Assembly: GCA_020536535.1 (NCBI GenBank)
Contig: JAHLWZ010000030.1
Coordinates: 1 to 55,182 of the forward strand
Direction of reading: 5' to 3'
DNA length: 55,182 nucleotides
From: Pelomyxa schiedti
Lineage: Eukaryota; Protista; Evosea
In this document: positions 1 to 39,357 of the stretch, piece after piece
How positions within the stretch are numbered: position 1 is the stretch's first letter
Layout of the letters: the number at the start of each line of letters is the position of its first letter
Notes under the pieces: model-generated
Databases searched by the model: none
Told to the model about the DNA's origin: nothing
Seen by the model: the letters and a program-made list of their open reading frames with translations, nothing else
Program-made: the position numbers and the translations under genes

Positions 1-1194
1 CCTGTCTTCACCGCCGCAACAGTTCCCACACGTTGTGGCTCCACTCTGATGGTTTCGCATTGTGGGTGCGGCATCGCGGATTTGTGCGGGTGGAATTTTC
101 CGGCAGGGTGATGACCTGTTGTCACTTTGATTTCAACCAAGGGATTGGCCGGGTGGTGCACAAGTTGATGCACCACAACACCTGAATATGTGTGAGTATC
201 AGAAAGGGGTGACTACAACACACACACCAAAGTTCCACACGTCTGTCTTGGGATCGCCGGTGCCGGTGCCGGTTCCGGTTCCGGTTCGGTAGGGAGGTTC
301 CGGAAATGAGTTGTGGGTGCTGTTTTTGTTGTTGGATTTGTGGGAGGTGGTTGTGGTATGTTCTTGCGGTGATCGGCATCCAAAGAATCCAAACTGTTCA
401 ATTGTGAATTCCCCGGCAATCCGGGTAGCTTTGAAGAAGGGAAAGAAAACCTTTGCCCAAGGTCCGGTTGCTCCTCCTGATTCCTGAAGTGATGTGATCC
501 AAATGCATCCTGTGTTAATGGTTGGTTAGGTGTTGTGGCGACACATGTAGGGAAAACAAACCGTCTTCAAGTAACAGTCCATTGTGAACGAGAGGAGGCT
601 GTTGCGAGTGGAGGTGCTCCAGTCCTTTTGCAACGTCTCTCAGAATCTTCTCCCTCAAACTCATTGTCAAGAGACTCCCAATGAGTGAGGACACTTCGGT
701 GGAAGGTCTCGGCATCAGTAGTTCCCTCAGGTTGAGTGGTGAATCGCCGACGAAGTTCTGAGCAATTTCCGGTGGAAGGATATTTGAAAGAAGCACCGGG
801 GGTAACTGCGCAGGCACCACCCACAACTTTGTTTCATCATGAATGCGCGCACCTGTGTAGTTCACGAGTTCACATGGGTGCTTGTAGATCGAAGACACCA
901 CTTTGTTTGGAATCTCCCTCCAAGCAGAAATCACAAGCAGTATTGCCTCCAGCACTAGTGGCACCTTATCACCCTCGTAAATCAAGATTTTGCCATCGTT
1001 CACAGAATCAGTAGATGTTGCGCCAGTCGTGAGGTAAGCAAGTTCAGGAGCAATGACCGTCAGTTTCACGGGCGGGGCACTTTCTTCCCCTCGGGGGCAT
1101 TTGATGCTACGTTCTCCGTGCAGTGCGGCCCTGAGTACGTCACCCTCTCGAAGGAATTTCATGTCAGCTGAGCTCTCTTCATTGTAGAGGAAAT
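1..1194 (-). CDS. Roco-like pseudoenzyme copy A, partial (end of COR plus pseudokinase exons); runs off the left window edge and is cut by an N-gap
   Basis: ORF 515-1162 (COR end IAPEL, kinase VIa LRDVAKGLEHLH..LVHNGLLLEDG). Downstream exons splice to ..PWAK|FGFFG..PKTDVWNFG|VLV. Near-identical to copy H 35154-36342. Confidence 0.85.
256..285 (-). repeat. (ACCGGA/ACCGGC)n hexamer repeat encoding Thr-Gly in the pseudokinase activation segment of copy A
   Basis: Plus strand gccggt x3 then tccggt x2. Related arrays occur at about 16665-16690, 26207-26227, 30733-30766 and 35406-35435. Confidence 0.9.
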
Positions 1195-1294
1195 NNNNNN
1201 NNNNNNNNNNNNNNNNNNNNNNNNNNNNNNNNNNNNNNNNNNNNNNNNNNNNNNNNNNNNNNNNNNNNNNNNNNNNNNNNNNNNNNNNNNNNNN
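1195..1294. other. Scaffold gap (100 N) with non-overlapping flanks
   Basis: Run of exactly 100 N; the left flank is mid-COR of copy A and the right flank is the 3' end of copy B. Confidence 0.99.
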
Positions 1295-1313
1295 CGCGAT
1301 TTTTTGAAGTCAT

Positions 1314-4300
1314 TCAATCACCAAAGTAGTCCCATGCCTTGAGGAGGTCGCACATCGAGGGTCTTGAGGAGGGGTTCACAGTCCAACACAAGGTCATGAG
1401 CTCCTTGGCCCATCTGGGTGTCGATTTGGGGAAGACGGGCACAATACTGCAGCCAGTCTTGACAGCAACAACAGTGGCCAGGCGTTGTGGCTCCACTGCG
1501 ATGGTGTGCGGCTGGGCCCACGGAAGCCTCGTCGAGGGGTGTTGGTGGGGATGGAACCTGCCGGCGGGGTGCCCTGGTGTGACCTGCACTCGCTGCAGGG
1601 TGTTCACAGGGTCGACAACCTGGCGAACAAGCACACCTGTGTGCGTGTTTATGGGCTGTGTTACAAGAGAGGGAGAGGGGGCAACACACACCAAAGTTCC
1701 ACACGTCTGTTTTGGGGTCACTTCCACCCAGGTGAATTCCGGTTGCGGTGTGAGGTTCCGTAACTGAGTTTTGGGTTCCGGTGTTTTTGGATTTGTGGGA
1801 GGTGGTTTCAGGATGTTCTTGTGGTGGTAGGCACCCAAAGAACCCAACCTAATCAATGTGTGTGGTTACCGGTATATATTATATATAATATTAATTAATA
1901 TTCACAATGAGCGAAAGATAGCAACCTTTGCCCAAGGTCCGGTTGTTCCTCCTGATTCTTGAAGCGATGTTATCCAAATGCATCCTGTTGAGAATTGATG
2001 GTTGTGTGGCACGAATATTAATTAATGGGGGAGGGAGAACAAAGTCAACGAACCATCTTCAAGGAACAGACCATCGTGAACGAGAGGAGGATGTTGAGAG
2101 TGTAGGTGACACAGTCCTTTGGCAACGTCTCTCAGAATCTTCTCCCTCAAACTCATTGTCAAGAGACTCCCAATGAGCGATGAAACCTGTGCTGAAGATT
2201 TCATCAACAGTTCCCTCAGGTTGAGTGGTGAATTTCTCAGCAAGCTCTGAGAGATTACTTCCAGTGCACGGTAGCTTGGAGGAAACTCAAGAGGGATTGG
2301 CTTCTGCACCACCCACAACTTTGTTCCACAAACGCGAGCACCAGTGTAGTTCATAAGTTCACGCCGGGGCTTGGGAATCTCCCTCATAATAGAAATCATC
2401 GGCAATATTGCCTCCACCACCATTGGCGCCTTCTCACCTTCATAAACCAAAATGTCACCACTTCCCACAGAATCAGATGTTGTGCCAACCTTGAGATAAG
2501 AAAGTTCAGGAGCAATGTCCGTAAGTTTCATGACTGGAGCCTTTTTGTCCCCTCGGGGACATTTGAGGTGACTGGGCTCTTGGTCCAGTGCAACCTTCAG
2601 TACATCTTGAAAGTACTTCACTTGCTCTCTCTCGTCTCTAATTTTATTCATGAGGCAATGGGGGCAGGGGAAGGACTGCACTGCTGGGAGGTTGTTGACT
2701 TGGAAAAATCTGTTCAACCACATCAACACATGGGCTCCTAGGTTTACCCCAAATGAGAGTGAGTTATGTTGAATCCCATGACTGATGGGATGCGATGAAG
2801 AAAAGGTTGTTCTCATGAACATGTTGATTGTCTCCTCAGGCTGCTCGTCGATGAGAAGATCCTGTTTACCCCCCTCACACTTCTTTGACACCCACAGGCC
2901 AGTCTTCCAAAACACCTCTGGATAAACACCTGGTATCTGCCGCACCATGTTCATCAGTTGTGTGAGCATCCCTTCATGAATATTCTCAAGCCGGAAGGCT
3001 CTACCGGTTACAATGATTTTGTCCTTGGTGCTGTTAAACTTCCTAAAACTTCCCCATACTGAATTCATTAGATTCTCAGGCACGCCATCTGAACCACTCA
3101 TAGGGGGCTTTTGCAGTAGACAGAAGGAAATGTGAGGAACGTTGTCACACATGAACGCCAGGTGTAGTTCCTGAAGAAGAGATGACATCCAAGAGGAAAT
3201 TCCTGGCATCCGAGTCTGAACCTGCACTCCCAACAAGATTCTCTGAGCACAGTCAGCCATTTGATTGAGTTCTGCCTTCTTTTGACCTGTGTGGCGGGAT
3301 CTGTGTCATCACTATTCATGAACTCCCCAACGGCTCTTATGAGAGTGCCATAATTGATGCCCCTCACAGATTCCTTCATAGCAGAGAACTGGTTGTTGAA
3401 CCACTCTAGCTTCAACACAACGAACTGAGAGAGGATGGGTTGGGAGTTTGACCAGAGGGGATGCCTGAAGTGGATGATGGATCCTGTGTCCGACAGGAAA
3501 TCACAACACATCTCAAGATCAACTTCTGGATTCACTCCACTCAGAACACCAACACCACAGGAAGCAGCCATTTGAACAAAGTCAGTCCACTTGATGATGC
3601 TTTCTTGCACCACCCTCAGCCTCTTGGACAATGCGATCCATCTTGGTGAAACTGGTCTTGTGGTTTCCTTGGCAATTCTTTCAAGGAGCTGAGAAATTCT
3701 TCCAACTTGCTTTCCTGTGATGGGTTTGCATGTAGAAGCTGAGTTGAAGGTGAATGGAGGGGAATCAGAGAACCACTCATAATCCTTGAAGTAGTTGATT
3801 ACAGAAACTGCACGAAGAGTGAGGTTCTTGAATCGGTCTGAATGCAGGATTGGGTCCACTGTTCGTGAAAGTTTTTCTTGGATGTCAGGGTACGCTCTGC
3901 CGAACGCAACGAGGATAATTTGGGCAGTTCCGCGAACGTTGGATTGACTCCAACACCTAGATATTTCATCAAGCCAGAAGAACAATTTCTTTGGGGGTTC
4001 AGTCTCATCCAAATTGACTTGGAAAAAATCGAAGAATGCCAGGAAAACAGAATTGCTGCAGAAGAAGCACGGGAAAAATAGGTGGTGTTTTTCACCTGAG
4101 TTGGAAAAATTGAGTGGGCTTGGTGAAAAAAAAAAAGAAAAAAAGAAAAAAGGGCGCTGCACACCCAAGCTCCACACTGTCCATGTGTGTGACTCCTCTT
4201 TATTGTGCATCTTGAAATCCTGCTGAGTGTTGATGACGGCTGCATGATGGACGTATCTTTTTTTGAAGTCCAACTTCAGTTTGTGTCTTTTGTCTTTCAA

Positions 4301-5629
4301 GCACTTCAAAACATCTTCCTGCAAGTTTCTGTCCTCCCCGAAGCAAATGAGTTTGTGGGAATTTGAAAACTTGGCAGACTCGGCAAAGAGCATGCGGTGG
4401 ATGTACCATCTGTTCCCCATCGGCTCTTCATTAAACTTGGCAATATCTTGTACTTTGGTATGAGTAAGCCACTGTGGTAGTTGCGTAATGGAATTGTGAC
4501 GAAGGTCCAGGTTCTGACACGTTATTCCTGAAAGTTGTTCTGGTACTGATTTCAAATTCAGGCCTCCAAGGGTAACAACCTCGTCTTGCATGGATTTTGC
4601 CAGTATCAGTTCAGTTACCGCAGGCCAGTTTTTCACTTGAATCCATCTTTTCAGTGCACATCCCAACACTGAAATTGATTCATGAAACGGGACGTGGGGC
4701 CCTGGACCTAAAATTGGAAGAAATTTGTTCCGCACTGTGGATGGAGACATGTACGTAATATCAAGCCCAGTTCCAGGTGGCAAAACCGACTCTATTATAT
4801 TTACTTGTGATGAATTCGATACCATAATTGGGGTTGGGTAATATACCGTAACCGGGGAGTCTTGCCGTTTCAAGTATCGAGCGAAATAATCCCGGTGGTG
4901 TGCGTGGTTGCCCTTCTTTGGTGATCCCTTTCAACAACTTGAATGCACCGATCTGTTTGTTGTCAGATGGCGGTAAGATATTGTAATACAGCAAACGCAC
5001 CGAAAACGCGGCGACTAAGCTGCCCCGCCTATCTGCCTTTCCATTGGAAATCCCACAATCCACAAGCAAGAGATTCCTGGCTTTAGCCGCAGCCTTCGCA
5101 TTGCCCTCCATATCGAAAATTCCACCTTGATACACCCCTGCCAGGGAAGGAACCATCCCCTCGAGGCACTTTGGGACGTCAGGGGACTTTACCATGGCCA
5201 CAACAACAACAGCAGCAGCAGCGTCGGCGTCGTCGTCGTCACTGCGTCCCATAATATTGCCAGCCCAACCGGGCATGCTCGTGTCCCGGAGCACCCTGGG
5301 CCCGGTGACCCACCCATTCCTGTGCAGCCTCACCCTCACTCTCCTCATCCTCCTGCCGCCGCCATTGTCCCCTAATTGCAATTCCATTCCCTCTGGTGTT
5401 GTTCGGGGGACGGGTTGGCGCTCGGGGTTGAGGCCGGAGTAGAAGAAGAAGGGATCTTGGTCTGGGAGGGTGATGGTGAGTCGCCCCGGCGCTGCTGCTG
5501 CTGGCCCGCTTCGGGGGTGATGCCGCGTGTCTCGAGTTCGTCGAACAGCATGGAGACGCAAGACTCATCGCCGATGACCGCGCACTTTACAACAGGCACC
5601 CCAATCGCTTCGTCTTTGTGATGGTGCAT
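1314..5629 (-). pseudogene. Roco-like copy B (pseudoRas-LRR-pseudoRoc-COR-pseudokinase) with two 1-nt deletions
   Basis: ORFs 5372-5656, 4761-5561, 3098-4873, 2022-3260 and 1314-1856 tile the same 7-exon architecture as the paralogues. Frameshifts lie at about 5480 (GGC GAC TC ACC vs paralogue GGC GAC CTC ACC) and about 3268 (CAG AAC TC AAT CAA ATG vs CAG CAC CAC AAT CAA ATG). Consensus errors cannot be excluded. Confidence 0.75.
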
Positions 5630-5945: not shown

Positions 5946-8900
5946 TCAAACACCAAAGTAGTCCCATGCCTTGAGGAGATTGCGCACCGATGGCCTTGAG
6001 GAGGGGTTCACAGTCCAACACAAGGTCATGAGCTCCTTGGCCCATCTGGGTGTCGATTTGGGGAAGACGGGCACAATACTGCAGCCAGTCTTGACAGCAA
6101 CAACAGTGGCCAGGCGTTGTGGCTCCACTGCGATGGTGTGCGGCTGGGCCCACGGAAGCCTCGTCGAGGGGTGTTGGTGGGGATGGAACCTGCCGGCGGG
6201 GTGCCCTGGTGTGACCTGCACTCGCTGCAGGGTGTTCACAGGGTCGACAACCTGGCGAACAAGCACACCTGTGTGCGTGTTTGTGTGTGTTACAGGAGAG
6301 GAAACTACACACACCAAAGTTCCACACGTCGGTGTTGGGATCATTTCCGCCGGTGTGAATTCCGGTTCCGCTGCGATGTGCTGGTAATGAGTTTTGGGTG
6401 CGGGTGGTTTTTTTGGATTTGTGGGGGTTTGCCGGATGTTCTTGTGGTGATCTGCACCCAAAGAACCCAACCTGTTCACTCGGTCATTACCGGTAATTTA
6501 CATTGAGGAAGTATAGCAACCTTTGCCCAATGTCCGGTTGTTCCTCCTGATTCCTGAAGTGATGTGATCCAAATGCATCCTGTAGGTTGCGTGGCACGAA
6601 TATTTATTAATGGGGGAGGGAGAACAAAGTCAACGAACCATCTTCAAGGAACAGACCATCGTGAACGAGAGGAGGATGTTGAGAGTGTAGGCAATCCAGT
6701 GCTTTGGCAACGTCTCTCAGAATCTTCTCCCTCAAACTCATTGTCAAGAGACTCCCAATGAACGATGACACCTCGGTGGAAGGTCTCATCATCAACAGTT
6801 CCCTCAGGTTGAGTGGCGGAACGATTTCTGGGAAAGGATGGTTTGGAGGAAATTCAAGAGGTATTGTCTCAGACTCCACCAACAACTTTGTTCCATCATG
6901 AATACGAGCACCAGTGTATTTCAAAAGTTCAGTTTGCTTTGGAATCTCACTCAAAACATAAATCACGGGTAAAATTGTCCCTGCAACATGCTGGGCATTC
7001 TCTCCCTCATAAATAATTTGGCCATTGCTCTGCGAAGTGGGTGTTGTGTCAACCTTGAGGCAAGAAAGTTCAGGAGCTATTTCAGTTAGATTCAAGGATT
7101 GGTGCTTTTCCTTCTGGAAGGGGCATCTGAGGATGCTTGTCGCATCCCGTGCAGCCATAAGAACCTCCCCCTCCTCAAAGTTTTTCAGTGACGCCAGGGG
7201 CCCCCCTCCCAGTACTATATCCTTGAGGCAATGGGGACAGTAGAAGGACTGCACTGCTGGGAGGTTGTTGACTTGGAAAAATATGTTCAACCACATCAAC
7301 ACACGAGCTGCCAGGTTGAGTCCCAGTGAATGTGAGTGACAGGTTTCAGTGGCAGGCGAAGAAAAGGTTGTTCTCATGAGCACGCTGATCGAGTCCCCTG
7401 GTTTCTCAATGATGAAAAGATCCTGTGTGACGCCCTCACACTTCTTTGATATCCACATGCCAGTCTTCCAAAACACTTCTGGTTGCATTCCTGGGATTTG
7501 TCGCACCATGTTCATCAGTTGCGTGAACATCCCTTCGTGAATATGGTCAATGTGGAAAGTCCTTCCACACACGATGGTTTCGACTTTCTTGAGTGGCTGA
7601 TTCCTAGAAGCTGGCCATACTTCACCCAGTAATAGCTGGAGACTGTAACTCATAGGGCTGTCAGTCAAGCCAGGCATAAGAGAGAAGGAAAGGTGAGGCA
7701 CATTGTCACACATGAACGCAAGCTGTAGTTCCTGAAGAAGAGACGACATCCAAGAGCTAATGTCTGGCATCCAGGTCTGAACATGACCTCCTGATAAGAT
7801 TCTTTGGGCAAAGTCAGCCATTTGACTGCCACTCATTCTTTTGAACTGTGTGGAGGAATCCGTGTCTTCACTGCCAAGGGGCTTCTGGTGGTCCCTGAGG
7901 AGCTTTAGAAAAGAGATGCCCCTCACGTCAGATAACAGCTTGTTGAACCACTCTAGCTTCAGCACAACAAATTGACAAAGTATGGTTTGGAACTTTGACC
8001 AGAGGGGATGCCTGAAGTGGATGATGGATCCTGTGTCCGACAGGAAATCACAACACATCTCAAGGTCAACTTCTGGATTTAATCCACACAGAGCTCCAAC
8101 ACCACAGGAAGCAGCCATTTGGACAAAGTCAGTCCACTTGATGATGCTTTCCCGCATCACCCTCAGCTTCTTGGAGAATGCGATCCACCTTGGTGAAACT
8201 GGTCTTGTGGTTTCCTTGGCAATTCTTTCCAGGAGTTGAGAGATTCTTCCAACTTGCTTTCCTGTGATGGGTGTGGATGTAGAATCTGTGTTGAAGGAGA
8301 ATGGAGTGGAATCAGAGAACCACTCGTATTCTTTTACGTGGTTGACAGTAAGTGGTTGGATAACAGAAACTCCACGCAGAGTGAGGTTATTGAATCGGTC
8401 TGACTGTAAAATGGGGTCAACTATTTGTACAATTTCTTTCTGGATGTCAATTTCAGTGGACACATTGGCGTGCACAAGGAGGATAATCTGGGCATTTCCG
8501 AAAACGTTGGATTGACTCCAGCACCTGGAAATTTCATCAAGCCAGAAGGACAATCTCTTCAGGTGTTCCTTCCTTTTGTTCAAAGTGCAGAACACCAGGA
8601 AAACGGAATTACTGCAGAAGAAGCATGGGAAAAACGGGTGGCAGTTCTCACCTGGAAAAATTGAGTGGACTGCGTGAAAAAAGCACTACACACCCAAGCT
8701 CCACACTGTCCATGTGTGTGATTCCTCTTTATTGTTCATCTTGAAATCCTGCTGAACGTTGATGACGGCTGGCTGGTTTTCCTTTCTTTTTAAATTCAAC
8801 TTCAGTTTGTGTCTTTTGTCTCTCAAGCAGTTCAAGACATCTTCCTGCAAGTTACTTTGTTCCCCAAAGCAAATGAATTTGTGGGAATTTGGAAACATGG

Positions 8901-10354
8901 GAGACTCTCCAAAGAGCATGTGGTGCATGTCCCATCCCTTTCCAATCGGCTCTTCATCAAACTTTGCAATGTTTTGTATTTTTGCATGAGCAAGCCATTG
9001 TGGTATCCAAGTGATGGAACTGTGACGAANNNNNNNNNNNNNNNNNNNNNNNNNNNNNNNNNNNNNNNNNNNNNNNNNNNNNNNNNNNNNNNNNNNNNNN
9101 NNNNNNNNNNNNNNNNNNNNNNNNNNNNNCCAAAGAGCATGTGGTGCATGTCCCATCCCTTTCCAATCGGCTCTTCATCAAACTTTGCAATGTTTTGTAT
9201 TTTTGCATGAGCAAGCCATTGTGGTATCCAAGTGATGGAACTGTGACGAAGGTTTAATTGCTGACAGGTTATCCCTGAAAGTTGTTCTGGTACGGATTTC
9301 AAATTTAGACCACCAAGAGTGACATCCTCGTTTCGCATTGCTTTTGCCAGTATCAACTCTGTTATTGCCGGCCAGTTTTTCACTCGAATCCATCTTTTCA
9401 GTGCTGACCCAACAACTGAAATTGATTCAGGATACGGGACATTGGGCACTGGACCTAAAATCGGAAGAAATTTGTTCCGCACTGTGGATGGAGACATGTA
9501 GGTGATATCAAGCCCAGTTCCAGGTGGCAAAACTGACGCAATTATATTTTTTGTGATGAATAATAAATAATATACCGTAACCGGGGAGTCTTGCTGTTTC
9601 TAGTATTGCGCGAAACAGTCCTTGTGGTTCCCCTTCTTTGATCCCTTTCAACAACTTAAAAGTTCCAATCTGTTTTAGATCAGCAAAAAGTGCTTGGTAA
9701 ACAGGTTATTGTTATTGCTGTAATAGATGAGAGATGGAAGAGACTCACCGAAAAGGCCCTCACAAATTTTTCACGTGTAGTTCCAGTTCCACAATCCACA
9801 AGCAACAGGTTTTTGGCTTTGGCTGCTGTGGCCGCGAGGACCTCCAGCTTCTCTGTGACACCTCTCCTCCCTGCGTACAGCTCGCTCAAGGCACCCGCCA
9901 TGTCGGCGGTGATTTTGTAGCCAGGGGAGTTGGCCATGGCCACGACCACAGCCGCATCAACCCCTGATTCCAGCTCCCTCCTGAGACCTTCCCGCCACCG
10001 CATCCTGTTGAGCCTCACCCTCACCACTTTGCCTCTCTCCCTGTGCCCGTGCCCGTGCCCGTGCCCGTGCTCCTGCCCGTGCCTGTGCGTCCTCGCCGAC
10101 TCGGACGCCGCCCCCTTGCTCCGCTCCAGCACCAGGCCCTGTCGTTGTTGTTGTTGGTGGTGTGGCCCGGAAGGGAGGGTGACGGCGACGGTGAGGACGC
10201 CGGGGGCTGGCGCATCCGCTGGTGACGGCGACGGCGCGATGCCGCTTGCCACCAGTTCCTCAAACAGCGACGAGATGGCGGACTGGTCCCCTACGAGTAC
10301 GCACTCGACGACTGGCACCCGCTCTCCACTTGGTTCCTTGCGACAGGCCAACAT
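5946..10354 (-). CDS. Roco-like pseudoenzyme copy C (apparently intact once the spurious gap is collapsed)
   Basis: Exon 1 VVECVLVGD..VRVRL..NLLLVDCG..AFS|IGTFKLLKG..PGY|VLPPG; LRR LGGLNLKSVP/LNLRHSSITWIP; Roc-like KFICFG..WTVWSLG|ENCHPFFPCFFC; COR RPVSPRWI, DLEMCCDFLSDTGSIIHF, FWKTG, CPHC; kinase-like LHSQHPPLVHDGLFLEDG|..WAK|VGFFG..TDVWNFG|..CWTVNPSSRP. All introns GT-AG. Confidence 0.85.
9030..9129. other. Scaffold gap (100 N) between overlapping contig ends
   Basis: 8909-9029 is repeated exactly at 9130-9250 (121 bp). Confidence 0.95.
10043..10070 (-). repeat. (CACGGG)n repeat encoding HGHGHGHG in exon 1 of copy C
   Basis: Plus strand gtgccc x4 plus gtgc. Confidence 0.9.
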
Positions 10355-10491: not shown

Positions 10492-11728
10492 TCAAATTCC
10501 AGGGGGGAGAGGAGGGTTCATGACAAACTTATAGGCAGTTGGGCAGCAGCACATATGTACAGTAGGGAACATTGGAACAGAGGTGTCCACATCACAATAT
10601 CTAACAAGTGGTGTATGATTTCTCCACACACCAACACAGGCCCTCTCCTTGTTGCTGGTTCCCTCGGCACGTGTTTGAAATGTGACGAGGAACGAGAACC
10701 TGTCACCAGGCATCGCTTGAGCCTGGTCTGCTGTAACATTCAGCGAGACTCCTGAGGGAGCAATCACTTGTGTGCCTTGGACTCTGGTCAGAATGCTCCA
10801 GCCAAAAGACAGGCCAAAAGACTTCACACCCCTGCACTCGCTCAGATGTGGGTATGTGATTGGGTAGAAGTCACCCCCGTGACTCTTTTCAGCATCAAGA
10901 ACCATCCCCATGAGAGATGAACTGGCTCCCAGTCCTTCCTTATTAACGTTTACAAGAAATTAAGTGCATTGTTTGTTGAGAATTAATTACCTGGCATGAT
11001 TGAGTGATAGGCTTCACCAGATCAAAGGCCCAATACACCATGTTTGAATTACCAGCAATTTGCTGAATAGAAGGTTCCAACCAAGCGATCCTCCCTCCAA
11101 CCGTGCTTGCACATTTGCATTTAATGCCTTCATCTAAGTCTCTCCACACCACTGTATCATCCTCAATTGTGATACCTCCCCCTATTGTCTGCCACGTTCC
11201 ACGTGTGTACACATGAATTGTAAATTCTGCTGTTTTTGTTTTTTGTTTTAGTTTCAGTGGAACGGGAGGAGTTTTTGTTTCGTTTCAGTGGAAAGGGAAC
11301 TAGTTTTTTGCAACGTTTACTCAGTGCACACCCATTATCCACTCTATGATTAAGGTTGCCACAGAGGGAGGCACGTTGAGTGCTGACATCACACTGGCGC
11401 CACCTGCCCTGTGATGCCACCCTGCCAAGAACGCAACCGACTTCTGCACGGCAACATCACGCAACCTACGCCTCGTAGTTGTGGTAGGGCGATCGGCGAT
11501 GCTCGTTGTTTGTTGTGGCTGAATTATAGAGGAGGTTGTTGGAGTGGAAACGGTAGTGCCCCGCTTCCTTCTCCAAAACATCTGTTTGATTCCTTGTGTG
11601 AAAGTGATGACTTTCCGAACAAGGGAGGACAGCAGCATCACTTGAGAGGCAATACTGGGGGGCCCCCACTTTGGCCGCACAGAAGGAGGTGGTTCCGCTA
11701 CCCCTGCGGTACTCCCGCTTGTTGTCAT
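10492..11728 (-). CDS. Hypothetical protein, HxRxG-motif family (3 exons)
   Basis: ORFs 11321-11728 (AFLAGWHHRAGGASV..LNVPPSVATLIIEWIMG), 10943-11212 and 10492-10911 join in frame through two GT-AG introns (..IMG|EFTIHVYTRG; ..SCQ|EGLGAS). Confidence 0.6.
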
Positions 11729-11927
11729 TTCAACTTTTTATTGCTTATCACACCTCGCCACGCCCCAGGTCGTACTTCTAGTCAAAAATACAATAAAAAA
11801 ACGAGTTAGAACCAGTAAAACAAACACAGTCACTACGACATCGTTTTCAGACTAAAAACCACCACCACTTACTGTTTTGTTTCGGTGGTACCCTTGTTGT
11901 GACTCCCGACACAGCCAACAGAGCGAC

Positions 11928-25682: not shown

Positions 25683-25790
25683 ACTGAATAGTGATAAACT
25701 GAATAGTGAATGTGCACCTTACAAATGAAGATCAAATCAGTATTTTTTCTGATGGAATGTTTGTCCCAATTCGAAAACGGGTGATGAGCA

Positions 25791-28700: not shown

Positions 28701-30200
28701 CCAAGCTCCACACTGTCCATGTGTGTGATGCCTCTTTGTTGTGCATCTTGAAATCCTGCTGAATGTTGATGACAGACGGTGGAATACTCTTTATTTTGGG
28801 GTTCAACTTCAGTTTGTGGCCTCTGTCCTTCAAGCATTTCAAGACCTCTCCCTGCAAGCGATTGTCTTCTCCAAATAAAATGAGTTTTCTGGAATTTGGA
28901 AACGTGGGCAACTCTCCAAAGAGCATGCGGTGCATATCCCATCCAGCTGGTTCTTCTTTGGTCTTGTCAAACAGGACAATATCCTGTATTTTGGCACGGG
29001 GAAGCCACTGTGGAAGTTGAGTGATGGAGTTTTGACGAAGGTACAGTTTCTGACATGTTATTCCTGCGAGCTGTTCTGGTACTGATTTCAAATTCAGGCC
29101 CCCAAGGGTGACGTCCTCGTGTTCCATTGCTTTTGCCAGTATCAGCTCAGTAATTGCAGGCCAATTTTTCACTTGAATCCATCTCCTCAGTGCACGCCCC
29201 GCAACTGCAATCCCTGGATGGTACACGTGACTGTTTTCTTGACTCTCATTGCTTGGATGGTGGAAATTTTGAAGAAAGTTATTCCTGACAGTGGAAGGAG
29301 ACATCTCCGTTATATCAAGCGCATTTCCAGGTGGCAGGCATGATTCTGTGTTTTTGTGAATCTCAGATATTTGGGCGGCTAAATATACTGTAACCAGGGA
29401 GTTTCGCACTCACAGTTTCAAGTATTGAACAAAACAACCCCCAAGGGTGCCCTTCTTTTATGGTCGCTTTCAACAACTTGAAAGCACCGATCTGTTGTCG
29501 ATTAGAATATGAAAATTTCAAAATACAGCTAACTGATATGTATGTATCTCTATGCGTATAATGATATAATATGTATGTCACACGCCATGAACGCCAGTGT
29601 AAATCCGACCTCCCCAACTTTTTCAGCATCTCCCATTCCACAATCCACGAGAATCAGGCTCCTGCTGTTGGCCGCGTTGTCCCCGCTGCTATGTTCATCC
29701 ATGGTCATGTGTCCCCCTCCTCCATACTCCCATCTCAGGTCCGTAACCAACTGGTCCAGGCAAGTTGCGAGGCTAGGTGACTTGGCCATAGCCACGACAA
29801 CGACTGTAGCAGCAGCGGCCTCGTTGTCATTGGTTGCCCCCCCCGTCTTACTCCCCCCCGTCCTCCCATGATGATGGCCCCGCTGCTCCCTCCACCCGTT
29901 CCTATTTAGCCGCAGCCTCGCTCTCCCCCGGCCTGACGCCAGTTGTGTGCTGGTGGGGGTGCCCGAGGCGGCTGAGGCGGCGGGCCACTGCTCGGGGAGC
30001 GTGACGGTGAGGTCGCCGGGGTGCTGGTCCGCCGATGCGGCTATGCCGCGTGCCACGAGGCCCTCGAACAGCGCGGAGATGCACTCGGGGTCCCCGACGA
30101 ACACGCACTCGATCACCCGGGGGGCCAGCGACTGTTCGAAAGGCCGAGGACGAGGACTGGGGGCACCGTCGGCGGGGTCGAGGGACGCGGCCGATGTCAT
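25791..30200 (-). CDS. Roco-like pseudoenzyme copy F (apparently intact)
   Basis: ORFs 29550-30419 (VIECVFVGD..LILVDCG), 29363-29641 (IGAFKLLK), 26401-29409 (LRR-Roc-COR-kinase N part) and 25791-26189 join through conserved introns. The exon 1/2 junction needs either a GC donor or an upstream acceptor. Confidence 0.82.
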
Positions 30201-30310
30201 TGTGAGTGTAATCCCGTGTGTAGGAAAAGCGTCAGTATCAAAGCGTCCATTCTCGGGAATGGAACAGATCGAAAAAAAGGGTGATGAGTGTCTGCCTTGA
30301 TGCTCACACA

Positions 30311-33300
30311 TCAGGGCAGTGATGGGGAGATGTGATTCCACAATTTGAGGAGGGAAGACATTGTGGGCCTCGAGGAAGGATCCACTGTCCAGCACGATGT
30401 CATGACTTGCTTGGCCCATTCTGGTGTAATCATCGTCGTAGTATCACCGGTGAACATCGGCACGATGGTGCAACCTGTCTTAACGGCTGCAACTGTTCCC
30501 ACACGTTGTGGCTCCACTCTGATGGTTTCGCATTGCGGGTGCGGAACGGCGGGGTGACTGGGATGGAATTTTCCGGCAGGGCGATGACCTGCCGTGACTT
30601 GCATTTCAACCAAGGGGTTGGCCGGGTGGTGCACAAGTTGATGCACCAGAACACCTGAACATGTGCGTGAGTATGAGTGAGGGAATGTCTGACAATACAC
30701 ACCAAAGTTCCACACATCTGTCTTGGGATCGCCGGTGCCGGGGGTGCCGGTTCCGGTTGCGGTTGCGGAAGGAGGTTCCGGAAATGAGTTGTGAGGGGTG
30801 TGGTGGTGGCTGTTGTTGTTGGATTTATGGGAGGTGGTTTCCGGATGTTCCCGCGGTGGTAGGCATCCAAAGAATCCAAACTGTTCAATCGATCGTTACC
30901 GGTAATTTCATGTTGGAGGGGAATAACAACCTTTGCCCAAGGTCCGGTTGTTCCTCCTGATTCCTGAAGTGATGTGATCCAAATGCACCCTGCACGCGTT
31001 GTGAGTGTTGTTGCTGTGATTCATTTTGGTTTGTTGTGCCACATTTTAAATAAATCTATAATAATAACGGGCGTCGCGCGCGCGGGGCGGGGGCTGGTTG
31101 TGTGGTGGGAGAACAAAGTCAACAAACCATCTTCAAGGAATAATCCATCGTGAACGAGAGGAGGATGTTGAGAGTGTAGGCAATCCAGTGCTTTGGCAAC
31201 GTCTCTCAGAATCTTCTCCCTCAAACTCATTGTCAAGAGGCTCCCAATAAACAATGACACCTCGGTGGAAGGTCTCATCATCAACAGTTCCCTCAGGTTG
31301 AGTGGTGAATTTCTCAGGAAGGTCTGAGCGATTACTTCCGGTGAAAGGTTGTTTGGAGGAAGTGAGAGGGATAGAGGCTCAGATATCACCCACAGCTTTG
31401 CTTCATCACGAAGGTGAGCACCAGTGTAACTAACAAGTTCACGTGGGTGCTTTGAAATCTCCCGCAAAACAGAAATCACAGGCAACACTGTTTGCGCTGC
31501 ATACAGAGCTCTCTCCCCCTCATAAATTGTTTGACCAAAACTTCCAGAAACAGAGGGCAGTGTGCCAATCATGAGATTAAAAAATTCCGGTGCGATGTCG
31601 ATCAGTTTCACGAGTGGTTCATCTCCTTCCTGCTTCGGGCATTTGAGGTTCCTCTTTCCATGCAGTGCAGCCATGAGCACATCACCTTCTTTGAAGAAGT
31701 GGAGAGTCGCACTATTTTCACTGTAAAGAGCATTCTTCAAACAAAAGGGACACGGGAAGAACTGCACTGCTGAGAGGTTGTTGACTTGGAAAAATCTGTT
31801 CAACCACATCAACACATGGGCTCCCAGGTTGGCCTCAAAGGCGGGTGAGCCACTGGCTTCATCGGATGAAGAAAAGGTTGTTCTCATGAACATGCAGAGC
31901 GACCCCCCTGGTTCCTCAGATGTGAGCAAAAGATCTTGTGTGACTCCCTCACACTTCTTTGAGACCCAGAGGGCTGTTTCCCAAAACACCTCTGGCTGAA
32001 CTCCTATCTGTGCCACCATGTTCATCAGTTCTGTGAACAGACTTCCATGAACATTTTCAAGTCGGAAGGATCTTCCGCTCACAATGATTTTGTCCTTGCT
32101 GGGCCGTGGTGGATTTCCGGATACATTCCCGGTGATGGGTCCCCAGAGTTTCCTGAGAGTCATAAAGCCTGTCCCCAACTGGCCAGGCAGCAGACAGAAG
32201 GAAAGGTTGAGAACGTTGTCACACATGAACGCCAAGTGCAGTTCCTGAAGAAGAGATGACATCCAAGAGGAAATTCCTGGTTGCCGAGTCCGATCCTGCA
32301 CATCCCACAATATTTTTTTGGCCGAGTCGGCCATGTTATCGAAGCACTGGGCAGGGGGAGACCTGCCAGTCAGTGCATGGAAGCGGTCAGCAGATATTCC
32401 ACTGACAGCTTGAGTGAGGTCAGATGACAGCCTGTTGAACCACTCTGGATTCAGGAGAACGAACTGAGACAAGTTCGGATGGGATGAGTTTGACCAGAGG
32501 GGATGCCTGAAGTGGATGATGGATCCTGTGTCCGACAGGAAATCACAACACATCTCAAGGTCAACCTCTGCTTTGGTTCCACAACGGGAAGGAACACCAA
32601 CACCACACGAAACAGCCAGCCGAACAAAGTCAATCCACTTGATGATGCTTTCCGGAACCACCCTCAGTCTCTTGGAGAATGCGATCCACCTTGGTGAAAC
32701 TGGCCTTGTGGTCTCTCTGGCAATCCTTTCCAGGAGTTGGTCCACCCTTCCAATTTGCTTTCCTGTGGCTGGTGTGTTCGTTGATGACTCGTTGAAGGAG
32801 AATGGAGTGGAATCGGAGAACCACTCGAATGACTTCAAGGTGCTGACAACATAAACTCCACGCAATGTGATGCTCTTGAAGCGGTCTGATGAATGTAGAA
32901 TGAGGTCCACTGTTCGCGAGAAGTTTTTCTGGATGTCAGTGAACACTTTGGAGGGGGTGAACACGATGAGAATGATCTGGGCATTTCCGTGAACGTTTGA
33001 TTGGCTCCAGCACCTCGATATCTCATCAAGCCAGAAGAACAATCTCTTTGGCGGATCATCCTTCAAAAAGAATGACACCAAGAAAACGGAATTGCTGCAG
33101 AAGAAGCACGGGAAAAACGGGTGGCAGTTTTCATCTGGGTTGGGGAAGAAAATTTGAGATTGAGAACAAAAGATAAAAGGATGGTGATCAGAGGGAAAGG
33201 GGCACCACACACTTAAGTTCCATACTGTCCATGTTTGTGATTCCTCTTTGTTGTGCATCTTGAAATCCTGCTGAATGACATACGGTGAAATGCTTGAGAT

Positions 33301-34922
33301 GTGCTTTTTTTTGGAGTTCAACTTCAGTTTGTGGCCTCTGTCCTTCAAGCACTTCAAGACCTCTCCCTTCAATCGATTGTCTTCTCCAAATAAAATGAGC
33401 TTCCTGGAAGTTGGAGCTATGGGCAACTCTCCAAAGAGCATGCGGTGCATATCCCATCCAGCTGGTTCTTCTTTGGTCTTGTCAAACAGGACAACATCCT
33501 GTATTTTGGCACGGGGAAGCCACTGTGGAAGGTGAGTGATGGAATTGTGACGAAGGTCCAGTTTCTGACATGTTATTCCTGAGAGCTGTTCTGGAACAGA
33601 TCTCATATTCAGGCCCACGAGACTGACAACCTCGTTTTGCATTGCCTTTCCCAGTATCAGCTCGGTGATTGCAGGCCAGTTCTTCACTTGAAGCCATCCT
33701 TCCAGTGCCAATCCAACCGCGATCGTTGCGCGGTGCGGCTCATGGTTAGCTTGACTCCCGTCGGTTGGTTCATGGTGGGAATTTCGAAGTAACTTATTCC
33801 TGACAGTGGAAGGAGACATCTCGGTGATCTCAAGTGCATTTCCGGGTGGTAGAAATGATTCTATGTTTTCGTGACCAAACGCCAATGGCAATATTTGTTT
33901 TTTTTTATGAGTGGATATACCGTAACCGGGGAGTCTTGCCGTTTCAAGTATTGAGCGAAACAGTCCTTGTGGGGTGCATTGGTGCCCTTCTTTGGTGGTC
34001 CCTTTCAACAACTTGGATGCCCCGATCTGTGGTAGTTGTGAGGAAACAATTCGGCTAAGAGAGAGGAGAAACACACCGAAAACGCCACTGCGAATTTGGC
34101 ATCCCTGACTTTGCTTGAATGTGTAATTCCAATTCCGCAATCCACAAGCAACAGGTTCCTGGCATTAACAGCCGCAGCCGCGGCGAGCCCCCCCACGTTC
34201 TCCCCCTTCGCATACAGCAGGGCCAGTTCGTGCGCCAAGCTGTCAGGGATCTGGTAGTCCGGATTCCTCGCCATTCCCACAACCACAACCGCGTCCACTC
34301 CCGCTGCCCCGCTGCCCTCCCCGTCCAGCTCCCCTTCCGCGGACCCCCCCTCCGTCGCCGCCTCCCTCGCCGTCGCCCTCTCCCTGTCCCCCTTGCCCCT
34401 CGCGGGTGCCCTGTTTTGCCTCGCCATGTCCTCCCACAGCTTCCTCATCATCAGGACGTTCTTCCACTCCACGCGGTTGAGCCTCACCCTCACCCTCCTC
34501 CTCGTCGTCCCCGTCCCCGTCCCCCCGCCTCCGTGGGGCTCGGCGCCCCCCTCCCGCTCCCGCTCCCCCGGCGCCGCGTCTCGGGTTGGCCCTCCGTTGT
34601 GGTGGCACCGCTCATGGTGTGCTGTTGTGGGGTGCCGCTGGGCCTCTGTTGCTACTGCGGATGGTGATGGTGATGGTGATGGTGTGCTGGTGGGCCGAGG
34701 TGGTGGCTGGTGGACCTGGGGGGGCAAGGGGGGCAACAGGTCTTGGTCGGGGAGCGTGACGGTGAGGTCTCTGGGGTCTTGGCCCGGCGACGCGGCGATG
34801 CCTCGGGCCACGAGGTCGTCGAACAGCGCCGAGATGCAGCCCGAGTCCCCGACGAACACGCACTCGACAACCGGCACCGCTTCGTGTTGTCCGTGAGGGC
34901 TCGGGCGGGAACGATGCGCCAT
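30311..34922 (-). CDS. Roco-like pseudoenzyme copy G (apparently intact)
   Basis: ORFs 34005-34922, 31021-34140 and 30311-30715; all domain motifs and six GT-AG introns present. Confidence 0.85.
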
Positions 34923-34996
34923 CCACGCAGCGAGAATTTATTTCGTTGTCGCTGGTCAAGTCGTTTTTCGGCGAAGGGATTCGGGGAAATCTGATT

Positions 34997-37900
34997 TCAG
35001 GGCAGTGATGGGGAGATGAGATCCCACAGTCTGAGGAGGGAAGACATTGCGGGCCTCGACTCATGGTCCACTGTCCAACACGATGTCATGACTTGCTTGG
35101 CCCATTCTGGTGTCATTGTTTCGGCACCTGTGAACATCGGCACGATGGTGCAGCCTGTCTTCACCGCCGCAACTGTTCCCACACGTTGTGGCTCCACTCT
35201 GATGGTTTCGCATTGTGGGTGCGGCATCGCGGATTTGTGCGGGTGGAATTTTCCGGCAGGGTGGCCTATTGTCACTTTGATTTCAACCAAGGGATTGGCC
35301 GGGTGGTGCACAAGTTGATGCGCCAGAACACCTGAACCTGTGTGAGTATCAGAAAGGGGTGACTGCAATACACACACCAAAGTTCCACACATCTGTCTTG
35401 GGATCGCCTGTGCCGGTGCCGGTTCCGGTTCCGGTTCGGAAGGGGGGTTCCGGAAATGAGTTGTGGGTGCTGTTTTTGTTGTTGGATTTGTGGGAGGTGG
35501 TTGTGGTATGTTCTGGCGGCGATCGGCATCCAAAGAATCCAAACTATTCAATTGTGAATTCCCCGGCAATCCGGGTTGCTTTGAAGCAAGAAGGGGAAGA
35601 AAACCTTTGCCCAAGGTCCGGTTGCTGATTCCTGAAGTGATGTGATCCAAATGCATCCTGTGTTAATGGTTGGTTAGGTGTTGTGGCGACACATGTAGGG
35701 AAAACAAACCGTCTTCAAGGAACAGTCCATTGTGAACGAGAGGAGGCTGTTGCAAGTGGAGGTGCTCCAGTCCTTTTGCAACGTCTCTCAGAATTTTCTC
35801 CCTCAAACTCATTGTCAAGAGACTCCCAATGAGTGAGGACACTTCGGTGGAAGGTCTCGGCATCAGTAGTTCCCTCAGGTTGAGTGGTGAATCGCCGACG
35901 AAGCTCTGAGCAATTTCCGGTGGAAGGATATTTGGAAGAAGCACTGGAGGTAACTGCGCAGGCACCACCCACAACTTTGTTTCATCATGAATGCGCGCAC
36001 CTGTGTAGTTCACGAGTTCACATGGGTGTTTGTAGATCGAAGACACCACCCTGTTTGGAATCTCCCTCCAAACAGAAAGCACAAGCAGTATTGCCTCCAG
36101 CACCAGTGGCACCTTCTCACCCTCGTAAATCAAGATTTTGCCATCGTTCACAGAATCAGTAGATGTTGCGCCAGTCGTGAGGTAAGCAAGTTCAGGAGCA
36201 ATGACCGTCAGTTTCACGGGTGGGGCACTTTCTTCCCCTCGGGGGCATTTGATGCTACGTTCTCCGTGCAGTGCGGCCCTGAGTACGTCACCCTCTCGAA
36301 GGAATTTCATGTCAGCTGAGCTCTCTTCATTGTAGAGGAAATTCTTCAAGCAATGGGGACACGGGAAGACCTGGGCTGGTGAGAGGTCGTTGACTTGGAA
36401 AAATCTGTTGAGCCATATCAGCACATGGGCTCCCAGGTTGATCCCAAACGAGGGACAGTCACTGGCTTCAGGGTCTGCATCAAAGGTTGTTCTCATGAAC
36501 ATGTCGATTGACAGCCCGTCTTTTGGAGATGTGACGAGAAGATCCTGTGTTATACCATCACCCCTCTGGGATACCCACAGGCCAGTCTTCCAAAACACCT
36601 CTGGTTGAACTCCTTGAACCTGTTGCAACATATTCATCAGTTGAGGGAGGATCCCTTCATGAATACTTGTAAGCTGGAAGCACCTCCCATTCAGAATGGT
36701 TTTGTCCTTGCTGGGTGACAGATTCACGGTGTTAGGTCGCCAGAGTGCAATCATTCTTGCAACTGACGAGTTGGGGTTATCCCAGTCAGGCAGCAGACAG
36801 AAGGAAAGGTAAGGAATGTCTTCACATGTGAACCCCAAGTGCAACCCCTGAAGAAGAGATGACTTCCAAGAAGAAGACAGTCCTGGTAAATCGCCTTGAT
36901 CATTCAGGAATTCCTTGGCACATAACACCATTCCATTGCGGTGCTGCACAGGGGGAATGGTAGTCAGGGCCTTGTAACGTTGTTTCTGGAGTGTGTCCAC
37001 GGCTAACCCACCAGAACCAACAAATGCAGTGAGGTAATAAGACAACTTGTTGAACCACTCTGGATTGATAACAACGAACTGAGACAAGTTCTGGGGGGAT
37101 GAGTTTGACCAGAGGGGATGCCTGAAGTGGATGATGGATCCTGTGTCTGACAGGAAATCACAGCACATCTCGAGGTCAACCTCTGATTTAGTTCCACCGC
37201 CACGTGGTACACCAACACCACACGAAACAGCCAGTCGAACAAAGTCAGTCCACTTCATGATGCCTCCCTGGGCCACCCTCAGCCTCTTGGAGAATCTGAT
37301 CCACCTTGGTGAAACTGGCCTTGCGGTTTCTCTGGCAATCTTTTCCAGGAGTTGAGGTATCCTTCCAATTTGCTTTCCTGTGGCTGGTGTGCTCATTGAA
37401 GGCTCTTCAAAAGTTAATGGAGTGGAATCAGAGAACCACTCAAATGCCTGACAGGTGCTAACAACATAAACTCCACGCAAGGTGATGTTCTTGAAACGGT
37501 CTGATGAATTAAGAATGGAGTTCCACACAGTTTCTACAAACGTTTTCTGGCTGTCAGTGAACACTTTGGAAGTACAGAATATGAGGAGTATAATTTGGGT
37601 TGGCCCGCGGTCACTTGATTGACTGCACCTGGATATTTCATCAAGCCAGAAGAACAATCCCTTTGGGGGTTCGTTATCAAAAGAGCAGAACAGCAAGAAA
37701 ATAGACTGACTGCAGAAAAAGCACGGTAAAAACTGGAATTTTTCAGCTGAGTTGGAAAAAGTGAGTGGACTGAAAAGACAAAAAGGGGGCATAACAGACC
37801 CAAGGTCCACACTGTCCACGTGGGTGACCCTTTGTTGTGCATCTTGAAATCCTGCTGAACGTTGATGACCTCCAGTTCATTGCCCTTTATTTTGGGGTTG

Positions 37901-39357
37901 TTGAATCTCAGTTTGTGTCTCTTGTCTTTCAAGCACTTCAAGACCTCTGCCTGAAAATCCTTGTGATCCCCAAAGCAAATGAGTTTTCTGGAATTCGAAA
38001 ACGTAGGAGACTCCCCAAAGAGCATGCGGTGCATACCCCATCCAGCTGGTTCATCCCTGTCAAACAGGGCAACTTCCTGTATTTTGGCACGGGGAAGCCA
38101 CTGTGGAAGTTGAGTGATGGAGTTTTTACGAAGGTCCAGCTGCAGACATGTTATTCCCGAGAGCTGTTCTGGTACTGATTTCAAATTCAGGCCCCCAAGG
38201 GTGACGTCCTCGTGTTCCATTGCTTTTGCCAGTATAAGCTCGGTGATTGCAGGCCAGTTTTTCACTTGAATCCATCTCCTCAGTGCCGGCCCCGCAACTG
38301 AAATCCCTGCATGGTACACGTCATTGCTCACATGGTCTTGGAAAATTCGAATAAATTTATTCCTGACACTGGAAGGAGGCATCTCTGTTATATCAAGCCC
38401 GGTCCCATGTGGCATAACTGATTCTACATTTCTGTGATGAATGCGGTACTGCACCATAATTGGGGTGGGCTAATATACCGTAGCCTGGGAGTTTTGCCGT
38501 TTCGAGTATCGAGCGAAATAATCCCGGTGGTGTGCGTGGTTGCCCTTCTTTGGTGATCCCTTTCAACAACTTGAATGCACCGATCTGTTTGTTGCGATTT
38601 GGAGTGAGATGGTGGTCGTAAGATATTCCAAGATAGGAGACAAGCAACGCACCGAAAACGCCACAATAAAGGCGACTTCCCTGTCTTTCTTCCCACTGGA
38701 AATCCCACAATCCACGAGCAACAGATTCCCGGCTTCAGCCGCCGCCGTCGCATTGGCCTCCACATCCGAAGCTGCGCCTCCATAAAGCGAGGCCAGGCCA
38801 GGAACCAGGCTATCAAAGCACCGAACCACACTAGGGGTCTTTTCCATGGCCACAACAACAACAACAACACCGCGTCCACTTCCCACAATACTGGCGTTGG
38901 CGTTGCGCTTCCTTGCCGCGGTGTTTGCGGCCCTCCACCCATTCCTGTTCAGCCTCACCCTCACGCTCCCACCCCCCCCACCCCTTCCCCCGGTCGCTGT
39001 TGCTGTTTCCGCGGCGGTGGTTGCTCCTGCTGCTACCGGTGGTGGCGGCGGTGTCGGTGTCGTTTGGGGGAGGGGGGAACTGTCTTGGGGGCTGTGGTCC
39101 CAGCAGTAGGGATCTTGGTCAGGGAGGGTGATGGCGAGGTCGCCCTTGGCTTGGTCCGCGTCGGCCGTGACCCCGCGCGCCGCGAGTTCGTCGAACAGCG
39201 AGGATATGCACTCGGGGTTCCCGATGAAAACACACTCCACTACCACCTGCCCCCTCCCCTCGCTGCTCTCGGCACCTTCGCCCTCGCTCGGCTGGTGGCT
39301 GTGGTGGCGGCCGCGGTGGGGAGGCAGCGGTTGGCTGTCGGCGCCGCGCTTCTTCAT
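34997..39357 (-). CDS. Roco-like pseudoenzyme copy H (apparently intact)
   Basis: ORFs 38563-39417, 38393-38710, 37534-38457, 35663-37819 and 34997-35656 join in frame through the conserved introns (e.g. WTL|AEKFQFLPCFFC). Confidence 0.85.

Follow-up and report, generated by a model that had tools for sequence, protein, structure and literature searches.

Scaffold JAHLWZ010000030.1 of the anaerobic archamoebid amoeba Pelomyxa schiedti (assembly GCA_020536535.1), analyzed here in its complete length of 55,182 bases (the window), contains eight Roco-like paralogues arranged head-to-tail on the minus strand between positions 1 and 39357. A review of the Roco family defines its members as GTPases, and Rocos have been studied as GTPase-regulated kinases. 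The Pelomyxa genes encode the Roco order of domains, leucine-rich repeats (LRR), Roc, COR, and a TKL-group kinase, in which the catalytic motifs of both Roc and kinase are lost, and five of the copies are maintained as open genes. We put the probability at about 60% that they form a lineage-specific, non-catalytic Roco subfamily that has kept the fold, is predicted to have lost both activities, and would serve as a scaffold or regulator.

The array was mapped by tblastn of the window against its own longest open reading frames (ORFs) and annotated proteins; all of the array's long ORFs lie on the minus strand. Coding sequence (CDS) lengths, in amino acids (aa), come from projecting the shared introns onto each copy:

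34997-39357, minus strand: copy H, intact, 7 exons, 1341 aa; the projected model equals the called gene in length and has no internal stop
30311-34922, minus strand: copy G (Pelo_520), intact, 1395 aa, all six introns
25791-30200, minus strand: copy F (Pelo_519), intact, 1308 aa, GC-AG intron 1
19937-24266, minus strand: copy E (Pelo_517), intact, 1335 aa, exact exon map, oldest lineage of the array
16384-19798, minus strand: copy D, a pseudogene with deletions, in-place inversions, and stops
5955-10354, minus strand: copy C, intact, 1289-1291 aa after collapsing an artefactual gap and a duplicated 121 nucleotides (nt)
about 1320-5623, minus strand: copy B, two frameshifts, otherwise open
1-1194, minus strand: fragment A, a 3' fragment of 1.2 kb holding the last ~340 codons, open in frame

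The original prediction, made from the window before this analysis, described eight tandem genes sharing six intron positions. The shared positions hold up in the nucleotide alignment, where GT..AG boundaries occupy homologous columns at all six wherever the region exists, and eight copies were located; as genes, however, A is merely a 3' fragment, D is rearranged and carries stops, and B is frameshifted. The five open copies of roughly 1300 aa that had been foreseen are H, G, F, E, and C, each uninterrupted after intron projection. Nucleotide identity among the copies is 58-85%, A and H forming the only near-identical pair. This is the largest cluster of dead Rocos found, the remaining dead-Roco loci being one tandem pair or single genes. 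Most neighbors are closely spaced, with ~74 nt between H and G (34923-34996), 110 nt between G and F (30201-30310), ~140 nt between E and D (19799-19936), and ~330 nt between C and B; wider spacers separate F from E (1.5 kb) and D from C (5.8 kb, containing two called genes). Same-strand spacers of ~74-140 nt leave scant space for promoters and terminators, making read-through or coupled transcription of the copies conceivable.

Domain boundaries are given for copy E:

24266-23573, minus strand: N-terminal α/β domain
23530-23007, minus strand: linker and short LRR
23006-22340, minus strand: Roc-like domain
22339-21020, minus strand: COR-A/B
21019-19940, minus strand: pseudokinase

Profile searches recover these domains with varying strength. 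The kinase is detected above the Pfam cutoff (PF07714, PK_Tyr_Ser-Thr, 27-39 bits against 23.1; 39 bits in copy E), COR-A lies at or beneath its cutoff (18-35 bits against 35.3; 34-35 bits in copy E), COR-B reaches 19 bits in one paralogue, Roc stays sub-threshold (13-18 bits against 27), and the LRR, about three units within one exon, has no significant match (E 0.33). A family profile compared with the PDB retrieved CTR1, Dictyostelium Roco4, WNK, RIPK2, and TAK1, all TKL-group kinases, with CTR1 and Roco4 nearest. An AlphaFold model of the Roc-COR-kinase portion of copy E (residues 380-1335), built on a 60-sequence alignment, has a predicted local distance difference test score (pLDDT) of 79.7 and a predicted template modeling score (pTM) of 0.83. 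Foldseek matched it best to LRRK1 (E 5.5e-23, 1059 columns) and then to LRRK2, both over ~1000 aligned columns, followed by the RocCOR and LRR-Roc-COR structures of Chlorobium tepidum Roco, Methanosarcina barkeri Roco2, and the Roco4 kinase (RocCOR entries 3dpu, 6hlu, and 4wnr). A second model, of copy E residues 1-600 (pLDDT 77.9, pTM 0.77), divides into a ~210-residue α/β domain at the N-terminus, a helical linker that carries about three LRR units, and Roc, and it matched the LRR-Roc part of LRRK2 and of C. tepidum Roco with an alignment extending ~70-100 columns beyond Roc.

Because the Pfam Roc match falls below threshold, the homology of the Roc segment is argued from this match between structures and from an alignment with canonical Rocos that runs without a break; a single-sequence PDB search with the Roc-COR segment of one relative (P0008:480-1010) gave no matches. 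In the predicted structure Roc is immediately followed by COR, the arrangement that defines the Roco family, and the LRR before Roc and the TKL kinase after COR place the proteins in the kinase-containing Roco group. Roco descent and the LRR-Roc-COR-kinase order, both part of the original prediction, are therefore supported by Pfam and by Foldseek, and the structure prediction that it had named beforehand as a check recovered Roc, COR, and kinase folds. Between COR-B and the kinase we also observed a CxxC...C(P) motif (C936, C939, and C984 of copy E; window ~21310-21150) that is >90% conserved across 60 Roco relatives, including canonical dictyostelid ones, and that may be a zinc site. To our knowledge, this motif has not been discussed for amoebozoan Rocos.

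Motif status was read from alignments anchored on canonical Rocos and from direct pattern searches, and by both routes the catalytic motifs of Roc and kinase are gone, as had been proposed. The G1 motif (canonical GxxxxGK[ST]) reads GDHKDFQA in H, GEDNRLKG in G, GEDNRLQG in F, GDHDDNKA in E, GEGSGLRE in D, GEQSNLQE in C, and GEDRNLQE in B, so that the P-loop now has acidic or bulky residues. In place of the G3 motif WDxxGQ the copies have W[TNSD]L, without the motif glycine, and none of the spliced strings (WSLDEN, WNLNEN, WTLAEK, WDLNRM, and WSLGEN) contains DxxG. No G4 aspartate motif ([NT]KxD or GTHxD) was found in the anchored alignments. All the motif strings that the original prediction quoted were recovered, although WSLG and WNLS partly read into an intron, since intron 3 starts right after W-x-L and these strings include its first base; the loss of DxxG is unaffected. 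In the kinase, the Gly-loop, VAIK lysine, αC glutamate, HRD aspartate, catalytic asparagine, and DFG aspartate are all gone in H, G, F, and C, copy E retains only a possible 'VAMK', and strands β1-β3 are mostly deleted in F and G. The HRDLxxxN position reads HDGLF[LI]E[DN]G, with HNG instead of HDG in H, D, and A, and the DFG position reads FFG, or HLG in E. Structural motifs have been kept, including COR-A CCDFLSDTGS[IV]IHFRHP and, in the kinase, K[TS]DVWNFG and CW..[DN]...RP. By the usual motif definition the kinase domain is a pseudokinase, and from its lost G1, G3, and G4 motifs Roc is predicted not to bind GTP.

The domains could instead still be enzymes or nucleotide-regulated switches that work through non-canonical residues, as rewired kinases of the WNK type or other types do. 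A P-loop lysine (GDHDDNKA) persists in copy E along with its 'VAMK' remnant, copy G keeps GEDNRLKG, constraint within the kinase is strongest in the region of the dead catalytic loop, and two relatives (P0008 and P0010) keep GxxxEKS and HGD..N. We regard such rewiring as quite unlikely, given that the canonical elements of Roc and kinase were lost together in most copies, that the P-loop has become acidic and its region evolves under relaxed constraint, and that β1-β3 are mostly deleted in F and G. Four features accordingly predict that nucleotide binding has been lost: P-loops that are acidic, the absence of the guanine-specificity motif, erosion of the kinase N-lobe, and relaxed constraint on the former P-loop.

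The N-terminal α/β domain had been called a 'pseudoRas', and the proteins 'triple-dead'. Its predicted order of elements (β1-α1-β2-β3-β4-α-β5-α-β6-α, pLDDT about 45-90) does resemble a G domain minus the switch-II helix. This predicted topology is the only indication of such kinship, and the sequence tests were negative: no member of any subfamily has a P-loop in this domain, profile-profile comparison with Roc in hhalign gave 0.1% probability, a PDB profile search returned no matches, and 0 of 19 members match a Pfam G-domain family. Foldseek matches to Rac and Rho do not discriminate between this domain and Roc. With no sequence signal for a G domain, the 'pseudoRas' label is unsupported and 'triple-dead' becomes 'double-dead plus an α/β domain' without family assignment. 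The domain is also present in relatives with a live Roc and therefore predates the inactivation of Roc.

These genes belong to a large radiation within P. schiedti. An exhaustive profile search of 1.84 billion representatives returned 76 proteins at E ≤ 1e-30. The first match from outside Pelomyxa, a canonical Roco4-like protein of the dictyostelid Acytostelium, is outranked by ~74 clusters at 50% identity. All 38 of the proteins looked up above that match are from P. schiedti; GenBank names for these relatives include hypothetical protein, 'leucinerich repeat kinase', and 'NLRC3', and several P. schiedti Rocos are misnamed 'NLRC3' or 'FBox-LRR'. A word-indexed homology search with the family alignment, in which the index is saturated at 8000 candidates, found nothing new and did not return even the protein of copy H. 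The consensus of 89 relatives is canonical (GxxxxGKTT, WDLGG, LVGTHxD, VAxK, HxDLxxxN, DFG, and APE). In a maximum-likelihood tree, a basal Pelomyxa grade has a live Roc and HGD...N...DFG, with Pfam Roc and COR-A above threshold. A 29-member clade lacks the kinase motifs, and part of it retains a live Roc; nested within it is an 18-member clade that includes the window genes and whose Roc is degenerate too (Shimodaira-Hasegawa-like approximate likelihood ratio test, SH-aLRT, 100 for both clades). This nesting indicates that the kinase was inactivated first and Roc second, within a Roco radiation found in Pelomyxa only. In a separate clade whose Roc is live and whose kinase is dead, some proteins end in a C-terminal HIT zinc finger (P0036).

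With ~74 Roco clusters at 50% identity, as against 11 Roco genes in Dictyostelium and ~35 in Ectocarpus, P. schiedti may have the largest Roco repertoire recorded so far. The original prediction knew of no description of the architecture, and none was found in the literature; the genome paper mentions neither Roco nor the large repertoire (PMC8887013). We found no literature on pseudoGTPase Rocos, and papers that combine Roco with pseudokinase concern LRRK2 or human ROCO proteins, none of them dead Rocos. The wider radiation, the stepwise loss of motifs, and the gene conversion described below were absent from the original prediction.

Selection on the intact copies bears directly on whether they are functional. 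Whole-CDS ratios of nonsynonymous to synonymous substitution rates (dN/dS, or ω; Nei-Gojobori) among the five intact copies are 0.32-0.46, bootstrap 95% intervals lie within 0.35-0.53 for the six pairs tested, and ω is below 1 in every domain. The lowest values are those of the LRR (0.11-0.19), the region of the dead catalytic loop (0.15-0.26), and COR-A (0.24-0.29), the former P-loop region is relaxed (0.56-0.73), and no 40-codon sliding window reaches ω ≥ 1. Synonymous divergence (dS) among these copies is 0.3-1.7 and very uneven along the genes. Five frames of ~1300 codons that stay open at such divergence, with confidence intervals for ω below 1, show that the intact copies are maintained by purifying selection, as had been anticipated; dN/dS near 1, which the original prediction had listed with missing transcripts as the sign of decay, was not observed. 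Copy D was considered as a relaxed-constraint pseudogene and this was set aside, as its pairwise ω is not clearly elevated and dN and dS are both about doubled; its status as a pseudogene rests on its stops, deletions, and inversions.

A rival account sees in the array a decaying repeat of non-functional gene relics or an artefact of single-cell MDA assembly. Copies B, D, and A are defective, the DNA came from single cells subjected to multiple displacement amplification (MDA), and the assembly was made with SPAdes (largest k = 121) and then P_RNA_scaffolder, which joins contigs by RNA-seq read pairs (PMC8887013). Fragment A differs from H at 46 positions, three of them indels (97% identity), and is joined to the scaffold through an unverified gap, and tracts longer than k = 121 that are identical between paralogues could be collapsed repeats. 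Yet the five intact copies keep ~1300 open codons at dS 0.3-1.7 with intervals for ω below 0.55, splice sites are conserved at six positions, and members of the dead subfamily are also found on other scaffolds. The copies differ at 15-42% of nucleotides, so they are not assembly duplicates, and duplication of the array by assembly was rejected on this ground, A and H being the only near-identical pair. For the five intact copies we reject both neutral decay and assembly artefact, and for the array as a whole we consider decay or artefact very improbable.

Three gaps interrupt the scaffold within the array:

9030-9129: 100 N inside copy C, with identical flanks 8909-9029 and 9130-9250; artefactual
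16238-16337: 100 N in the last exon of D, with identical flanks 16117-16237 and 16338-16458; artefactual
1195-1294: separates fragment A from the 3' end of B, flanks without overlap; a true gap

At both artefactual gaps the duplicated flank is exactly 121 nt, the SPAdes maximum k, and these gaps are therefore unmerged contig overlaps with no sequence missing. Deleting the gap and one repeat copy (221 nt) leaves copy C in frame, and the 3' end of D is repeated across its gap. The flanks of the third gap do not overlap, so that the continuity of B and A is uncertain, as is the placement of A, which rests on RNA-seq scaffolding. Since contigs within C and D were joined by RNA-seq pairs, transcripts of these copies are indirectly implied.

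The gaps and splice sites also account for differences between our models and the GenBank annotation. Annotated proteins map exactly onto GT-AG exon sets, with intron 1 after the N-terminal exon (phase 0), intron 2 after a ~100-nt second exon (phase 1), intron 3 within Roc, where it immediately follows W-x-L in the former G3 (phase 1), and introns 4-6 in the kinase. In the annotation, the models of F and G appear to be mis-spliced. That of G (1415 aa) keeps the in-frame 60-nt intron 2 (33861-33920); that of F (1287 aa) has an extra 51-nt in-frame 'intron' (27709-27759) that deletes residues conserved across the paralogues, together with a 16-nt micro-exon (29492-29591 region) where a GC-AG intron would preserve an invariant 'AF' motif. 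In copy C the homologous acceptor of intron 2 is TG, and a CAG 6 nt downstream preserves the frame and gives 1289 aa (otherwise 1291); its annotation, Pelo_513 (756 aa), spans only 6607-8919. Copy B has a +2 frameshift near 3269, in COR, and a second one in exon 1; either it has become a pseudogene recently or its sequence contains assembly errors. An annotated 893-aa model (8-3260) merges the 3' part of B with fragment A, which is truncated by the contig end and by the gap at 1195-1294 and holds the end of COR-B together with the pseudokinase. Copy D lacks most of the stretch from exon 1 to intron 2 as well as the intron-3 region, has in-frame stops at 17164 and 17035, and is annotated as a 390-aa C-terminal piece only. 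Its adjacent blocks 18040-18417 and 18432-18572 are each inverted in place with their order unchanged, which is not a simple inversion; MDA chimeras or a real complex rearrangement are both possible. A paralogue, Pelo_17697 (P0006), is annotated with intron 3 retained in its G3 region. Owing to the scaffolding gaps, the GenBank annotation of this scaffold includes several truncated, fused, or mis-spliced genes, and other scaffolds of the assembly probably share such gap-broken models.

G and F share an identical run of 482 nt (permutation maximum 72) and two blocks of ~400 nt at 100% identity, and C and B share an identical run of 288 nt. Together with the uneven dS, these runs indicate gene conversion, repeat collapse in the assembly being the less likely cause; the conversion tracts lie at 33132-32832 and 31914-31514 for G/F and at the 3' end for C/B. 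A tree was built from a segment that every copy retains. It groups D, C, (H,A), (G,F), and B plus a gene on another scaffold with 100/100 support and leaves E outside, with dispersed paralogues. This topology points to an old lineage, E, and a younger burst. Tandem amplification and birth-and-death, both proposed at the outset, are thus supported, with B and D as pseudogenes and a dispersed sister of B, so that the array combines pseudogenization and at least one dispersal with concerted evolution.

The array might instead have an immune-like role and evolve by birth-and-death as NLR clusters or plant pseudokinase decoys do. The copies would then be sensors or decoys in immunity or symbiont management, acting as bait for effectors that target live Rocos, or as LRR ligand sensors, with the effectors coming from prey, pathogens, or endosymbionts. 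The tandem array with its pseudogenes, gene conversion, and lineage-specific expansion fits such a role, as do the moderately high ω of 0.3-0.5 and the live paralogues available for mimicry in the same genome. In brown algae, an immune-receptor function has been suggested for large ROCO repertoires (PMC3341825, PMC11378527), and P. schiedti hosts several prokaryotic endosymbionts (PMC10579272). The LRR is, however, the most conserved segment of these proteins (ω 0.11-0.19), and no 40-codon window of the genes reaches ω = 1; its ~three units in a single exon leave no room for exon shuffling; variation is found in COR insertions and in low-complexity loops of the N-terminal domain; and Pfam finds no NACHT, NB-ARC, TIR, or death domain. 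The analogy with NLR-type immune clusters drawn in the original prediction is not supported by these observations, and we think an immune-like role doubtful, if possible. A narrower idea, that the dead clade (at least 18 clusters at 50% identity) forms a decoy or guard layer, or an allosteric brake, for the species' very large repertoire of live Roco kinases, appears unlikely to us. Control of phagocytosed prey or of obligate prokaryotic endosymbionts would be a possible setting, and if true the clade would parallel, in an amoeba and on an LRRK2 scaffold, the pseudokinase decoys of plants.

We favor a non-catalytic scaffold or regulator. Tandem duplication was followed by gene conversion, pseudogenization, and occasional dispersal, and we hypothesize that the encoded Rocos would act as nucleotide-independent scaffolds or regulators in which a rigid Roc-COR core, the short LRR, and the C-lobe of the pseudokinase may offer docking surfaces. 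Through COR-B the proteins may pair among themselves or with the many live Roco kinases that the genome encodes elsewhere; pairing with and regulating live kinases is suggested by analogy, because pseudokinases do so with active kinases.

Several observations weigh against this reading. First, no particular pathway is indicated by a partner, a localization signal, or an effector domain. Second, ω values of 0.3-0.5 reflect fairly relaxed constraint, and pairwise estimates are distorted by gene conversion. Third, E and G retain the P-loop lysine, and some pseudokinases and pseudoGTPases bind nucleotide through non-canonical residues. Fourth, the alignment behind the AlphaFold model contained catalytically live Rocos, which favors a Roco-like fold. 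Finally, expression and the six splice junctions are deduced from annotation and homology, and in an MDA single-cell assembly the defects of B and D could be partly artefactual.

Other features of the window are:

10492-11728, minus strand: called gene of 360 aa in the D-C spacer (10492-15985), no detectable family
12138-15985, plus strand: called gene of 882 aa in the same spacer, no detectable family
24375-25694, plus strand: called gene of 422 aa between E and F, no Pfam domain
from about 43.3 kb, minus strand: choline-transporter-like gene in the flank 39448-55182
49614-50141, plus strand: ORF with a Ctf4_C domain (Pfam)

The three called genes within the array may be orphan genes or spurious calls. 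An ORF at 24330-25682 lies in a stretch of 58% GC, and a word-indexed homology search with a 440-aa spacer ORF found no detectable homologue. Among ten non-Roco ORFs of the window, Ctf4_C was the only Pfam match; the flank 39448-55182 is ordinary, with several further ORFs without family matches. Tandem Repeats Finder reported one trivial 31-nt repeat only.

Comparison with known systems places the array among Rocos and sets it apart from each of them. Brown-algal LRR-ROCO genes likewise form a large lineage-specific expansion with many pseudogenes (PMC11378527), but they encode LRR-Roc-COR without a kinase, shuffle LRR exons, and are mostly dispersed, whereas the Pelomyxa genes are tandem and their short, single-exon LRR is the most conserved part. 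The live P. schiedti 'leucine-rich repeat kinases' (KAH3767811.1 / P0013, P0015, and P0021) share the genome, the radiation, the Roc-COR-kinase core, and a 'GPWAKI' motif with the dead clade, to which they are the sister grade in the tree. They differ in keeping GDGGVGKTTL, WDLGGQ, GTHLD, GGFGKV, VAVK, HGDLHxGN, and DFG, in matching Pfam Roc and COR-A above threshold, and in having ~1750 aa and another N-terminus. With the Dictyostelium Roco4 group and human LRRK1 and LRRK2 the array shares the order LRR-Roc-COR-A-COR-B-TKL kinase, a superposition over ~1000 columns that extends to C. tepidum Roco, and the COR-A 'FL.D.G.IIHF' and CxxC...C motifs; the kinase aligns best with CTR1 and Roco4, including a 'SL.E..P..AK' insert before DFG. 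Unlike these proteins, the Pelomyxa copies have lost G1, G3, G4, and all kinase catalytic elements, lack WD40, contain only ~three LRRs, and carry the extra ~210-aa N-terminal α/β domain.

Beyond the Roco family, a kept fold, lost catalytic residues, and purifying selection together are the usual signature of allosteric or scaffolding pseudoenzymes such as KSR, HER3, MLKL, plant ZED1-type decoys, and the pseudoGTPase domains of CENP-M and p190RhoGAP. In contrast to pseudokinases and pseudoGTPases generally, the array has both switch domains of one protein dead. Activity-independent scaffolding by LRRK2 is still debated, and a maintained clade with the full Roc-COR-kinase fold minus both activities would be a natural test of the Roco scaffold. 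Live, kinase-dead, and double-dead relatives within one genome amount to an evolutionary dissection of the parts needed for a non-catalytic function, in which constraint falls on the LRR, on COR-A, and on the C-lobe where it surrounds the dead catalytic loop.

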